A DNA stretch of 64,000 bases from Macrostomum lignano (GCA_002269645.1 NIVC01001665.1:186001-250000), one strand, 5' to 3'; shown: positions 35,318 through 41,946, numbered from the stretch's first letter. Translations and numbers: made by a program. Notes: generated by a model not told the origin, from the letters alone.

Positions 35318-36525
35318 TCAGCTGCTGATGAAACCGTTCAGCCGCAAGAATGCGCAGATTTTATTAACACCGTGGATGCAATTGTCCGAAAGCAAACGGT
35401 ATTTAGAGCCGCAAATATAGAATAGTTGTCTTAGCGTCACTCCGAAACTGAACCAGCTGAACATGCTGGCCTTTAACTCGCGAATCAGTTCCCAGCCGTA
35501 CATATCGGATTTTTTTATTTTAACCAAGCGACACTCGCCCTTGCGATAGCACTCTCTGGACGTGCCGATTGCCTTATCGCTTTCTACCCCTGTGTAATTA
35601 TATTATGCGGCGTAGTCATGGGGTGAATGTTGCATGGGGGCAGTTGCCCCCCCCCCAAAAAAAAGAGGCTGGCAGAAATTATGGCACCCCCTTGCCCCGT
35701 TGCCCCCTTACTTGGCGCCCTCAATCACAACAGGTGCACAGCATCTCTGTTCCTGCCGTCATTTAGACTATATGTGCACAATATAGTTGGTAAGGAACTG
35801 TATGAATAAAACTAGTCTATTATCACGAACCCGAATCCTAAATCACTGACCTTTTTAAAAAAGAACGAGAAAAACTGTAACAATGACAGCCTCACCTTTC
35901 TCGATCAGGTAGAGCTCTCCACTCGTAGTCTTGGCTACCGCGGCTTGGTGCCCGGGCCCGAAGCCGCTTGAAAAGAGCGAACTACCGCCGGAGGCACTAT
36001 CAAGTGGCCGTTTGTAAACTTTTACAGACTCTACTTGAGCGTCAAGATCGACGTCTCTAGTTTGAGTCTGAATTGGCCATAAGCCTTGAATGGCTCGGCT
36101 TTGAATGTCATAGTCAACTGAATCAGATGATGCATCAGATTGAAACTTCCTCTGCCTGCTGATCCCCATGACTTCGTGGCCTCCTGAAACAGTTGTGAGG
36201 ATAAAAGTTTTGAAATATATCAGCACGCAGTTTCTGAAGGACAGAATTAAGATTATATCTAGCTAATTGGCTAACAAATTAGGGCCAACTCCGAAGGCAC
36301 AGAGTGAATATATTTACCGATTAGAGAAAGTCAAGGTCGCTATACAACTCTTTGCGGCTTTTACTGACTGGTTTAAACTGACCATATACAAAATAGCGAG
36401 TTTGCCAGCGAAGCCTTACCAAATCCGTTGGGTCGGAATTCACCAACAGCCTCAAACATTTGGCCTCTCATGGTGCCATTCGAACATTCGAGCGTCATTG
36501 CGCTACAATAGAAGCCACCGCTCAT
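35318..36525 (-). CDS. Uncharacterised ~220-aa protein, paralog A, putative permuted papain-like (LRAT/PPPDE-type) His/Cys enzyme. Exons 36420-36525, 35896-36183, 35318-35589
   Basis: ATG start, GT-AG introns in phases 1 and 1, open frame to TGA. Motifs VKVYKRPL...GHQAAVAKTTSGELYLIEKG and GSKYRLLSDNC. Exon structure is conserved in paralog B. Confidence 0.75.
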
Positions 36526-37180
36526 TGTGACTGCAAAAATTTAATTAACGTTTCGTTCCAGTTGTCGGTTCTTTTCTGGAAGGTTTTCTGAATATGGATG
36601 CTTAATGAATGATTGCCTTATTGCATACATATAGTGTGCATGTGATATATGGCTTGAGTCGAGTAATACGGTACTGTATAGATACGTACGTACGTGTATT
36701 CAACCAAAGGCCGCGCTACGAGCTTTATATTGTACTCACTATTATAGGTTGCATTATATTTCTCTGTAAGTTCTACTTTTCTCGTTTTGAGACTCAGACA
36801 GACAGACAGATAGACAGACAGACAGCTGTATGCAAAGAAGTAGACTGTAAGAAAAGCAGACAAATGGGAGCTACGAGTGCAGCGAAGTTCCACTTTGATT
36901 GAGTACAATTTAGCTATCTTACTGGCTATTTTTGAGTTGTTCAGGTGTGTGCGAGTCATGCACTCGTAGTTGGTTGGCTGGCAGTTTCTCTGTGCAGCTG
37001 TTCCTGCTGATCATCCGTGTGTACAATTTAAGTAGGCATAATAAAGTTACATACTTGTTACCTGTATATGTCTGTACAATCGTATAACTCCTATGACCAA
37101 TATGCTTTTTTCCATTTTATTTATTGTTTTAGCTAAAGTATTTCGACTGCGATTTAATTTAGAGAGCAGACAAAGGGCCT

Positions 37181-38088
37181 GTCTGTCTGTCTGTCTGTCT
37201 GTGTGTGTGTCTGTCTGTGTGTCTGTCTGTCTGTCTGTCTGTCTGTCTGTCTGTCTGTCTGTCTGTCTGTCTGTCTGTCTGTCTGTCTGTGTGTCTGTCT
37301 GTGTGTCTGTCTGTCTGTCTGTCTGTCTGTCTGTCTGTCTGTCTGTGTGTCTGTCTGTGTGTCTGTCTGTGTGTCTGTCTGTCTCTCCGTCTGTCTGTCT
37401 GTCTGTGTGTCTGTCTGTGTGTCTGTGTGTCTGTCTGTCTGTCTGTTTGTCTGTCTGTCTGTCTGTCTGTCTGTCTGTCTGTCTGTTTGTCTGTCTGTCT
37501 GTCTGTCTGTCTGTCTGTCTGTCTGTCTGTCTGTCTGTCTGTCTGTCTGTCTATCTGTCTGTCTGTCTGTCTGTCTGTCTGTCTGTCTGTCTGTCTGTCT
37601 GTCTGTCTGTCTGTCTGTCTGTCTGTCTGTCTGTCTGTCTGTCTGTCTGTCTGTCTGTCTGTCTGTCTGTCTGTCTGTGTGTCTGTCTGTGTGTCTGTCT
37701 GTCTGTCTGTCTGTCTGTCTGTCTGTCTGTCTGTCTGTGTGTCTGTCTGTGTGTCTGTCTGTGTGTCTGTCTGTCTCTCCGTCTGTCTGTCTGTCTGTGT
37801 GTCTGTCTGTGTGTCTGTGTGTCTGTCTGTCTGTCTGTTTGTCTGTCTGTCTGTCTGTCTGTCTGTCTGTCTGTCTGTTTGTCTGTCTGTCTGTCTGTCT
37901 GTCTGTCTGTCTGTCTGTCTGTCTGTCTGTCTGTCTGTCTGTCTGTCTATCTGTCTGTCTGTCTGTCTGTCTGTCTGTCTGTCTGTCTGTCTGTCTGTCT
38001 GTCTGTCTGTCTGTCTGTCTGTCTGTCTGTCTGTCTGTCTGTCTGTCTGTCTGTCTGTCTGTCTGTCTGTCTGTCTGTCTGTCTGTCT
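37181..38088. repeat. ~0.9-kb (GTCT)n microsatellite with an internal ~392-396-bp duplication
   Basis: Read directly. Rare variant units CTCC (37385, 37777) and CTAT (37551, 37947) recur at the same offset. Confidence 0.97.
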
Positions 38089-39559: not shown

Positions 39560-40550
39560 TGTTCGACTTTTGCAAATGCTCGCGCTTCTTTGAAGGCGGC
39601 GACAAATACTGGAAGCTCAACATAACTGGAAGCCGATGCACCATATCAATACCTTTAAGATCAGGCAGCATCTTACTGTCCCAATAATCTACAAAAGCGC
39701 AGAGTCGCGTTGAAAGTTTTAGAAAGGCGGCGGCAAACTCAAAAGCTCGATTTCCATGAAGAAATTAACGATTGCTGGAACGATTGGTGACTACCTGATG
39801 GAGCTGATGGGATTCGATGAGATGGGAGAGGGGAATGAAAGAATAGAGGAAATTAAATAAGAAAAGGGATGGAGAAAATGCAATCGCTACTGGCAGTAGT
39901 AGCTATAGTACAGGGGAAGGAGCTCATGTACCATCACATCAGTAGCTATTAATGCTCATCATAAGAAAATTTATACAAGTTTAAAAGAATCCTAAAAGCG
40001 TCTTTAGGAACCATTGCATGCATAGCAATGACATTTGTGTAGCTGTACATTCCATACGTAAAGAGCTGAAATTGCTTCAAAAAGGACAGACAGACGGGAG
40101 CGACGATTCCAGTCAGTCAAGCGGCAATTCGCATAAATGTGCACTTGTTATTTTCACTACAAAACCGGTCATGTGACAATGCAGTACCTTTTATTGTTTT
40201 TTATTCTAAAATAGCGATTACAAACGGTTGCAATATACAAGTAGCTCGGTCGCCGGCGAAGTTCTAAACTGAGATATAAAACATTAACTTTATATAGTGA
40301 CGGCATTACAGTAGCTTTCATGGCTTGATATTAACCAATCACAATTAAAGCCGATCTGTGAGGAAACACCTTAAAGTGAAAGAAGAAAAGATACTTTTTA
40401 ATGATCTACAACTATGAATAAACAATCGAAATAGGTGAAATACGGCATATGAGCCTAATGAAATTTTGTTAGTTATTAGTAAAAAACAAAAAGGTGATTC
40501 ACGATTTGACGAGGAATCAACTGTCGTATAGCAGAGCTACTTTCACTCGA

Positions 40551-41946
40551 TCAAGACGCATTGATGAAATTGTTCTGTTCCAAGAAGTTGCAGATTTTAC
40601 GAACACCGTCAATACAGTTGTCCCGTAGTAAACTGTAAGCGGAGCCGCATCTATCAAGCAGATGTCTTAGCGTCGCGCTGGAGTTCGGAAATTCGGCCTT
40701 CAGCTTGCGAACCAGCTCCCAGTCGTGGATATCCGATTTTTCTATTTTAACCAAGCGACACTCGCCCTTGCGATAGCACTCCGTGGACTTGCCGATGTTA
40801 CTTTCTCTGCTTACTCCTGGATAAAAAATTAAGAGCATAATTGAGCCGCTAATTATATAAGAAATTAGGAATAAAAATATAAATTGCAAAAGGATAATGT
40901 AGATCGTTTCTGCAAATCTAATTTTTAAATCTAGTCTAATCTAACCAATAACATTCCCATAGGTGACCACACGATGGCACCTCCCTCAGTGGCGCCGCCT
41001 CAGTGGCCTCCACTGACAAAAATTCTTGGCTACGCTCTTGCAGTTCTTGCTAGCTAAATTATAAAATTTCCCATCATGTAGACTAGCTACGCTCGTATGT
41101 TTGAATCTGGGGATGAGAAATAACTGGCTTAAAATCCTGATCCCGAAAAGAAAGAAAAACTCGAACAATAAAAGTTAATTGCTAGCGTCGGAGCATCTTT
41201 ACCTTTTTCGATCACGTAGCGCTCTCCGCTCGTAGTCTTGGCTACCGCGGCTTTGTGATCGAATCCACAGCAGCTCGAACTACTGCCGCAGAGTTTGTCA
41301 AGTTGCCGTTTGTAAACTTTTACAGACTTTACTTGAGCGTCAAGATAGAGGTCACTGGTTTGAGTCGGAGTTGGCTCAGCTCGACGAGATGGAATGGAGC
41401 TTTGAATGGCCCGGCCAAAGAAGCCTGGAAATCCATCGTCATCAGAGTCGTCACCGGAATCAGAAGAAGATGCATCAAACTGTAACTGCATCTGCCTGAT
41501 CCCCATGACTTTGTGACGACCTGAAACATTTGTAAGGATAAAAGTTTTGAAAAATATCAACACGCGATTACCCAGAGGAACAGAGGAGTGTAGCTAGCTA
41601 AGTAGCTAACACACGAGAACCAATCCCAAAAGCACAAGGTGAATATCTGTATGCCGATGAGAGTTAAGGCCGCTGTACATAATCTGTGAGCAGCGTGGGT
41701 GCTCGTGCTCAAGGGTCAACAGTGCAAGCCATTACATTTAATTTCTGATTTGTGGCGCTTTTACTGACTGGTTTAAACTGTTTAAATTGACTAAGCACGC
41801 AGCAGTTGGAATTTATAGTTTGCCAATGAAATCTTACCAAGTCCGTAGCATCGGAATGCACCAACAGCTGTAAACGCTTCGACTTTCATGATGCCATTTG
41901 AACATTCAAGCTTCATTGCGCTAAAGTATACAAAGCCACCGCTCAT
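40551..41946 (-). CDS. Uncharacterised ~230-aa protein, paralog B of 35318-36525. Exons 41838-41946, 41203-41520, 40551-40816
   Basis: Same start (MSGGF), same intron positions and phases. Motifs VKVYKRQL...DHKAAVAKTTSGERYVIEKG and GSAYSLLRDNC; frame intact. Confidence 0.75.

Follow-up and report, generated by a model that had tools for sequence, protein, structure and literature searches.

A tandem pair of spliced Macrostomum lignano paralogs in a lineage-restricted family with a likely, highly divergent permuted papain-fold domain

The G1 and G2 genes and their family

The DNA analysed here, a 64,000-nucleotide stretch of the Macrostomum lignano assembly (GCA_002269645.1, NIVC01001665.1:186001-250000; hereafter the window), is eukaryotic, with GT..AG introns, microsatellites and scattered retroelement fragments, and carries two minus-strand spliced paralogs of three coding exons each, G1 (35318-36525) and G2 (40551-41946). 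The gene models were obtained by joining exon-sized minus-strand open reading frames (ORFs), and yield spliced coding sequences of 666 nt for G1 and 693 nt for G2, encoding proteins of 221 and 230 aa that share 56% identity (BLASTP, E 5e-73). All four introns have GT..AG boundaries, and both introns of each gene are in phase 1 and occupy homologous positions. A first-pass annotation, made from the sequence alone, had described two genes with a common MSGGF start, matching intron positions and phases, and open frames that the ORF track breaks into fragments; the spliced models are clean on each of these points, both proteins begin with MSGGF, and the ORF list of the window contains the two genes only as exon-sized pieces. 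The four blocks that it quoted as conserved between the proteins, V.SVKVYKR.L, H.AAVAKTTSGE.Y.IEKG, ECYRKGECRLVKI.KSD...WEL.R.LKA and GS.Y.LL.DNC, were all recovered as written by BLASTP and alignment, and every exonic indel separating the genes in a DNA alignment is, as had been said, a multiple of 3. A tblastn search of the window found no third copy. The extents of the exons and the residues that they encode are listed in Table 1; residue numbers in the text are those of G2, and the G1 equivalents of His125 and Cys210 are His114 and Cys202.

Upstream of the coding exons both genes have a conserved GTGAGTAC donor and a TTTT(T/C)GCAG acceptor located 5 nt before the ATG. The conservation of this donor and acceptor between the paralogs suggests either an extra non-coding 5' exon or an acceptor site for spliced-leader trans-splicing, a process to which 38.8% of M. 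lignano genes are subject (PMC5730564).

Both proteins are already present in UniProt or GenBank as uncharacterised entries. G2 differs from UniProt A0A1I8HPC4 (M. lignano) only by T154K, and G1 differs from GenBank BOX15_Mlig012613g1/g2 by five substitutions. The GenBank annotation of M. lignano derives from a genome-guided RNA-seq assembly (PMC5730564), and the exon structure of G1 therefore has indirect transcript support; on neither of the two contigs with the pair does this annotation include a call for G2. A literature search with the Mlig gene identifiers returned nothing. The UniRef name of one paralog, A0A1I8H887, is 'LRAT domain-containing protein', and the names 'SAWADEE', 'Protein kinase', 'HTH_48' and 'PHD-type' domain-containing, attached to the clusters of family members P0001, P0002 and P0005, were set aside as artefacts of long fused gene models, namely P0012 (2752 aa) and P0014 (1901 aa).

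The family to which the two genes belong is small. A word-indexed search of 5.8e9 proteins retrieved only the G1 and G2 proteins themselves, an HMMER scan of 1.84e9 cluster representatives with a G1/G2 profile retrieved five proteins, and a second indexed search with a wider profile added one further member, while no further relatives turned up in IMG/VR viral contigs or JGI metagenome contigs, scanned with sequence patterns and with tblastn. The members fall into about five paralog groups (Mlig012613, A0A1I8HPC4, Mlig017153/Mlig000256, Mlig025840 and Mlig004476), and all named members are from M. lignano; the sole member outside the named M. lignano entries is an ORF without introns, on a eukaryotic contig of low coverage in an ENA assembly. 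A phase-1 intron within the Gly codon of (E/D)KG is common to G1, G2, Mlig017153 and Mlig025840, and these paralogs therefore trace back to a single spliced ancestor. At its locus (L006, 2286-4062 and 6001-6634), Mlig004476 is likewise tandemly arrayed: one full copy, diverged to 63-84% identity, is present, with further exon fragments upstream. The family is restricted to M. lignano/Macrostomum and is lineage-expanded, as the first-pass annotation had supposed, and G1 and G2 are tandem duplicates within it.

Two short regions of the pair are more alike than their surroundings. A 24-nt block in intron 1, CAGTTTAAACCAGTCAGTAAAAGC (minus strand; 36380-36357 in G1 and 41780-41757 in G2), is identical between the genes within an intron that is otherwise ~70% identical, and the last ~40 nt of the same intron are almost identical; the block may act in regulation or splicing, or may be left over from gene conversion. 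In exon 3 a 39-nt run, GAGTGCTATCGCAAGGGCGAGTGTCGCTTGGTTAAAATA (40785-40747 in G2 and 35561-35523 in G1), is the same in both genes, without a synonymous change even though overall synonymous divergence (dS) is ~0.4, and may reflect gene conversion or constraint at the nucleotide level.

Probable affinity of the conserved domain with permuted papain-fold enzymes

Only the C-terminal ~140 residues are common to the whole family. In an alignment of 12 sequences, with 22-40% identity between groups, the invariant residues are His125, Gly135, Lys142, Gly160, Gly200, Tyr203, Asn209 and Cys210, and Cys210 is the sole invariant cysteine; this invariance across old paralogs makes long-term constraint on the family core evident. 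The His...Tyr-x6-Cys arrangement of the permuted active centre is present throughout, as His125, Tyr203 and Cys210. Position 141 is Glu, Asp or His (His in P0006), and the N-C pair is followed by I/W, then D/H/N, then G/S/A.

Outside this core the groups differ. G1 and G2 have an N-terminal extension of ~90 residues, consisting of a conserved MSGGF...ECSNG module and an acidic Ser/Asp linker. Three other paralog groups have a C-terminal tail anchor (P0003, P0004 and P0011; hydropathy 2.0-2.4, vs 2.08 for PLAAT3) that lies ~25-40 residues past the NC motif, whereas no C-terminal transmembrane anchor is found in G1 or G2 (maximum 19-residue hydropathy 0.9-1.0). A signal peptide or a transmembrane segment in G1 or G2 was likewise rejected on a crude hydropathy scan, in agreement with the earlier remark that no signal peptide is apparent.

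The proposal to be weighed is that of the first-pass annotation, in which the His-before-Cys order marks a permuted NlpC/P60 thiol enzyme related to PPPDE/DeSI or to LRAT/PLAAT. The reference sequences for profile comparison were checked against the PDB (PLAAT3 against 4FA0; human DeSI-1 against 3EBQ, with a 100% match). Compared with human DeSI-1, the family core gives an hhalign score of 22.6 (P 0.0055), with GSAYSLLRDNC placed on GEAYNLFEHNC and Tyr203 and Cys210 on Tyr101 and Cys108; the matching part, against DeSI-1 residues 97-121, lies in G2 exon 3. Reversed-sequence controls score 10.3 and 11.7, and 100 column shuffles score 11.7 +/- 2.4 with a maximum of 18.8. The family score is on par with that of an established superfamily pair, DeSI-1 and PLAAT, at 22.0 (reversed control 12.6). 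A relaxed, extended alignment further places His125 on His38 and VKSVKVY on VKLYVYD; His38, Tyr101 and Cys108 form the active centre of PPPDE1 (PMC9012467). The nearest Pfam family is also Peptidase_C97 (PF05903), which matches residues 191-214 of G1/P0002, including the NC region, at 12.8 bits (E 0.08-0.11; cut-off 29.2) and matches no other family member. Among PDB sequences, the only matches were one of 'YVIEKG' to TM1112, which we take as chance, and one to a DyP peroxidase (E 0.4-1.6), and both were dismissed.

An AlphaFold2 (AF2) model of the domain, computed from the 12-sequence alignment, is moderately confident (predicted local distance difference test, pLDDT, 69.6; predicted template-modelling score, pTM, 0.70) and has strands at domain positions 9-19, 34-42, 47-53, 71-77 and 86-93 followed by helices at 102-109 and 116-133. 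In this model the conserved His begins the second strand and the Cys (domain position 120) is within the opening turn of the last, long helix. The predicted order of secondary structures fits the five-strand, two-helix core that is common to PPPDE1 and Cln5 (PMC9012467).

Taken together these data lead us to favor, with moderate confidence, the reading that the C-terminal domain belongs, as a very divergent member, to the cysteine enzymes with a circularly permuted papain fold (NlpC/P60 superfamily), its sequence being closest to PPPDE/DeSI (peptidase C97) and more loosely related to LRAT/PLAAT. Several results weigh against it. A Pfam hmmscan of G1, G2 and four other members places no family above its cut-off, and phmmer and hmmsearch comparisons with PDB sequences return nothing significant. 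The HH probability of the DeSI-1 match is 6%, with a confidently aligned stretch of only ~25-30 residues, and similarity to LRAT/PLAAT profiles does not rise above reversed controls. An AF2 model of the full-length protein, from a 3-sequence alignment, is uninformative (pLDDT 33.8). A Foldseek search of the PDB with the domain model gives no match at E<=1e-3, the best being a Josephin-type clippase (E 0.056; template-modelling score, TM, 0.29) and the Aichivirus 2A H-NC protein (E 0.54), and neither the DeSI structures (3EBQ, 2WP7) nor any PLAAT structure is among the top 50. The pair itself also bears signs of weak constraint, described with G2 below, that count in the same direction. The fold check thus has two sides, a predicted domain order of five strands and then helices, and a Foldseek search of the PDB that recovers nothing at this threshold; the thiol-enzyme proposal likewise has its invariant His125, Tyr203, Asn209 and Cys210 and its DeSI-1 score on one side, and the lack of a significant database-wide match on the other. 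Since no Pfam, PDB or Foldseek-PDB match is significant, membership of the permuted papain fold is likely, short of proven, and the family is not one that can be filed under either curated family, PPPDE or LRAT.

Comparison with the characterised families makes the distances clearer. With PPPDE/DeSI (DeSI-1 and DeSI-2; MEROPS C97, PF05903; 3EBQ, 2WP7) the family has in common the His before Cys, the Tyr seven residues before Cys and the Asn adjoining Cys (PMC9012467, PMC4281951), a G-x-x-Y-x-L-x-x-x-N-C block that aligns without gaps, an N-terminal V.V.VY strand followed by a long loop before the His strand, and a ~140-residue domain predicted to consist of five strands and then helices, with G1 and G2 predicted to be soluble. 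It differs in falling far below the Pfam cut-off and in the failure of its domain model to retrieve either DeSI structure, and also in having NC(I/W)(D/H/N)G in place of NCNxF, a His-Cys spacing of 85 rather than 70 residues, sister paralogs with a C-terminal membrane anchor where DeSI proteins have none, the additional N-terminal region of G1 and G2, and a distribution in one flatworm lineage only. A precedent for such divergence is offered by Cln5, a permuted NlpC/P60 Cys-based S-depalmitoylase with palmitoyl thioesterase activity that has 11% identity to PPPDE1 and keeps only the His-Tyr-Cys centre and the core (PMC9012467); Cln5 is, however, glycosylated and lysosomal and has an extra domain, and is likened to the present family by description only. 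The picornavirus (kobuvirus/Aichivirus) 2A H-NC proteins (7ZV1, 7ZV6), of the same permuted NlpC/P60 group, recur as weak Foldseek matches in both the PDB and BFVD, where the matches are to kobuvirus polyproteins, but none is significant (E 0.5-1.6, TM 0.24-0.42).

If G1, G2 and their relatives are such enzymes, Cys210, in the first turn of the long helix, would be the nucleophile, with His125, which opens a beta-strand ~85 residues upstream, as the general base and Tyr203 as a third active-site residue; Glu141 (E/D/H in the family) is a possible further contributor. Attack on a carbonyl would give a thioester acyl-enzyme intermediate, and the activity could be that of a thioesterase (S-depalmitoylase-like), an isopeptidase, or a lipid acyl hydrolase or transferase. 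PPPDE1, PPPDE2 and Cln5 cleave palmitoyl thioesters efficiently and isopeptides weakly (PMC9012467), and PLAATs hydrolyse or transfer lipid acyl groups (PMC4624172); by analogy, the most probable substrates would be acyl thioesters, acyl esters or isopeptides. The three tail-anchored sister groups would act at membranes, whereas the G1/G2 lineage would have lost the anchor, gained the N-terminal extension and become soluble.

The first-pass interpretation is therefore partly supported: broadly right, statistically modest, and overstated in importance. It had ranked the pair as the best candidate in the window for an undescribed system, whereas these are ordinary eukaryotic paralogs with database entries, one group of which already bears an LRAT name. 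The novelty lies in a probable divergent member of an established superfamily, found in one taxon only, rather than in a new type of system, and the sequences were already known as hypothetical proteins. If the assignment is confirmed, the permuted NlpC/P60 (PPPDE/LRAT) superfamily would gain a branch that is highly divergent and limited to one taxon; the chemistry of this superfamily is still under revision, PPPDE1, PPPDE2 and Cln5 having only recently been shown to be S-depalmitoylases. The assignment would also provide a testable function for about five groups of M. lignano 'hypothetical proteins', in a flatworm model with established transgenesis, and correct the misleading UniRef cluster names. 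The practical value is in annotation and in a candidate set for thioesterase and isopeptidase assays; no long-standing question is opened.

Alternative readings and the state of G2

Two other accounts of the domain deserve consideration. The family could be specifically LRAT/PLAAT-like (HRASLS; PF04970; 4DOT, 4FA0, 2KYT), a set of H-box/NC phospholipase-acyltransferases whose anchored paralogs use a Cys-His-(Glu/Asp/His) triad to remodel the phospholipids of membranes, with G1 and G2 as soluble derivatives; we regard this as unlikely. The permuted His...Y-x-L-x-x-x-N-C order is common to both, the hydrophobic C-terminal anchors of three paralog groups resemble that of PLAAT3 (PMC4624172), and the 'LRAT domain' label of A0A1I8H887, the repeated if weak Foldseek matches to 2A H-NC proteins and the His at position 141 of P0006 are in keeping with it. 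Position 141 falls in the strand that follows the one with His, at the place of His35 in PLAAT3, and a relaxed alignment places His125 on His23, Glu141 on His35 and NC on NC; however, the interval from His125 to position 141 is +16, against ~12 for the PLAAT His pair, and the alignment with His35 appears only in this low-confidence extended form. A profile of 12 PLAAT sequences scores 22.0-22.7 with the family (P 0.006), a score that 1 of 300 column shuffles reaches, yet reversed-sequence controls score 16.9-19.7; because these are almost equal, the hhalign signal with PLAAT3 alone or with the profile (P 0.006-0.03) was rejected as LRAT-specific evidence. Nor does Pfam LRAT match any of six members at E<=10, although PLAAT controls do carry PF04970. 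Of the PLAAT motif NCEHF(V) the family retains N-C alone, its own form being NC(I/W)(D/H/N)(G/S/A), and the loop from strand 1 to His is ~19 residues long, as in DeSI-1, rather than the ~6 of PLAAT3. The absence of PLAAT structures from the Foldseek top 50 and of an anchor from G1 and G2 also separates them from PLAAT.

It is also conceivable, if improbable, that the His...Tyr-x6-Cys likeness is coincidental and that the domain has a lineage-specific fold, perhaps common to giant-virus proteins, that is non-catalytic or has some other function. The only Foldseek matches below 1e-3 were obtained in BFVD and are to two uncharacterised Mimiviridae proteins, A0A2P1EKP2 of Moumouvirus australiensis (E 3.4e-4; query-normalised TM, TMq, 0.50) and A0A6N1NL70 of Tupanvirus (E 6.5e-4, TMq 0.55), over 120-136 columns at 17% identity, and the HH probabilities below 10% and the lack of significant Pfam and PDB matches also count in favor of this reading. 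Against this, His, Tyr, Asn and Cys are strictly invariant at 22-40% identity and the Cys is the only invariant one, the DeSI-1 score stands well clear of its reversed and shuffled controls, at the level of a genuine superfamily pair, and the predicted order of secondary structures fits the permuted papain core (PMC9012467). We would give similarly small credence to the idea that the family is a separate permuted papain-fold clade, found in macrostomid flatworms alone and structurally related only to proteins of giant viruses. Were that so, it would imply gene exchange from virus to host, or a new active-site architecture and substrate, as for example in a thioesterase that is soluble, has an N-terminal extension and serves a role specific to flatworms.

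The remaining question concerns the pair itself and is independent of fold. By the Nei-Gojobori method the ratio of non-synonymous (dN 0.28) to synonymous (dS 0.41) divergence between G1 and G2, omega, is 0.69 (N-terminal module 0.59, linker 1.03, domain 0.63), with a bootstrap 95% confidence interval of 0.46-1.04 and P(omega>=1) of 0.04, indicating weak purifying selection; a value near 1, which the first-pass annotation had named as telling against it, is avoided, though narrowly. The pair is present in two other genomic copies, on NIVC01001016.1 (L001) and NIVC01000189.1 (L002), and among these near-identical copies the exons are not better conserved than the introns. G1 is intact in all three. 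G2 exon 1 is 100% identical in L001 and L002, and exon 2 carries a CGA>TGA stop at codon 83 in L002 (exon at 5555-5872; window 41383) and a 4-bp frameshifting deletion in L001 (exon at 5322-5635; window 41334-41331), such that the description of the genes as intact holds for the window copies and fails for G2 in these two others. The deletion may be an assembly error, because it lies within a AAGTAAAGT repeat of otherwise 100% identical sequence; the nonsense change is less easily dismissed. G2 could accordingly be a redundant duplicate drifting toward a pseudogene, with the open frame in the window a copy not yet hit, a possibility that we take seriously while thinking it somewhat less than an even chance. 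In addition to the two lesions beside an uninterrupted G1, and a confidence interval for omega that touches 1, G2 is uncalled in the transcript-based annotation (PMC5730564), has 13 unique changes relative to the outgroup P0003 where G1 has 4, and differs between the window and L002 by five non-synonymous changes, one of them the nonsense change, and three synonymous ones. On the other side, the window copy and A0A1I8HPC4 are full-length and keep all of the family-invariant residues, the exonic indels between G1 and G2 all preserve the frame at a dS of ~0.4, the L001 lesion is the doubtful one just mentioned, and the DV1 line has extra copies of chromosomes, so that losing some copies is tolerated (PMC5730564). 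G1 is the better-supported functional gene, and G2 is a faster-evolving copy under relaxed constraint that looks partly dispensable.

The duplicated unit and other features of the window

Table 1. Exons, putative 5' introns and microsatellites of the G1/G2 region, in window coordinates
Feature	Coordinates	Strand	Remarks
G1 coding exon 3	35318..35589	-	272 nt including stop; splice model; Asn201, Cys202 (codon 35380-35378)
G1 coding exon 2	35896..36183	-	288 nt; splice model; His114 (codon 35950-35948), Glu130 (codon 35902-35900)
G1 coding exon 1	36420..36525	-	106 nt; ATG at 36525; phase 1; splice model
Putative G1 5'-untranslated-region intron	36531..36739	-	GTGAGTAC donor at 36739, TTTTTGCAG acceptor ending at 36531; paralog-conserved blocks
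(CTGT)n/(GACA)n microsatellite	37179..38089		~228 copies; upstream of G1; counterpart upstream of G2
G2 coding exon 3	40551..40816	-	266 nt including stop; splice model; ECYRKGECRLVKI, Tyr203, Asn209, Cys210 (codon 40616-40614)
G2 coding exon 2	41203..41520	-	318 nt; splice model; acidic Ser/Asp linker, strand VKSVKVYKR, His125 (codon 41257-41255), Glu141 (codon 41209-41207); 3' end after first base of the IEKG Gly codon
G2 coding exon 1	41838..41946	-	109 nt; ATG at 41946; ends in phase 1; splice model
Putative G2 5'-untranslated-region intron	41952..42126	-	GTGAGTAC donor at 42126, TTTTCGCAG acceptor ending at 41952; paralog-conserved blocks
(CTGT)n/(GACA)n microsatellite	42436..42763		~82 copies; upstream of G2

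Below each gene lies a segment of ~1.1-1.3 kb, at 32159-33244 for G1 and, between the genes, at 38254-39560 for G2; the two are 74-85% identical, contain several CCAATCAG boxes, and are also found twice in L001 and twice in L002. They were rejected as a coding element, the 221-aa ORF that they contain having no Pfam match, and may be part of the duplicated unit or a separate repeat. Since a (GACA)n array lies upstream of each gene and a similar segment below each, the tandemly duplicated unit is probably ~5.4 kb long, and the microsatellite upstream of G1 is likely to fall inside it. No non-coding RNA or tRNA was found in the G1/G2 region.

No link is apparent between the two genes and their neighbors, which are retroelement fragments, an RPEL gene, a TRIM-NHL gene and a fibrinogen-domain exon. 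A transposon origin, which the first-pass annotation had named as another outcome that would tell against it, was rejected: G1, G2 and the other family members contain no transposable-element domain and have no transposase, reverse transcriptase (RT) or integrase similarity, and genomic copy number is low, the few near-identical copies being expected because the genome is partly duplicated. The transposable-element fragments of the window sit away from the pair, at 8690-11119 and 24451-24795. The former (minus strand) is an 809-aa long-terminal-repeat (LTR) retrotransposon ORF with gag, zinc knuckle, RNase H and integrase; it has no protease or RT domain match, and the element is therefore internally deleted. 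The latter (minus strand) is the N-terminus of a mariner-type transposase (HTH_48).

Other features of the window are of separate interest. In the region 3433-8184, RPEL-repeat exons (3879-4265, minus strand) adjoin very long minisatellites with strong GC skew (a 24-bp unit x16, and a 30-bp unit x96 at 4521-7377), the minus-strand translation of which gives proline-rich repeats. The adjacent direct copies at 14456-19138 and 19145-23827, each of 4.7 kb, are 99.4% identical and AT-rich (GC ~0.31-0.36), and could represent either a very recent tandem duplication or a duplication in the assembly. A RING/B-box/NHL (TRIM-NHL) gene occupies 49792-56820 on the plus strand and has introns crowded with minisatellites; an exon for a fibrinogen C-terminal domain is located at 62737-63153 (plus strand). 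Within the TRIM-NHL gene, between the NHL-repeat exons at 55801-56178 and 56467-56820, there is a complete 5S rRNA gene (56266-56385, minus strand; Rfam 89.6 bits), which lies on the strand opposite to that of the surrounding gene.

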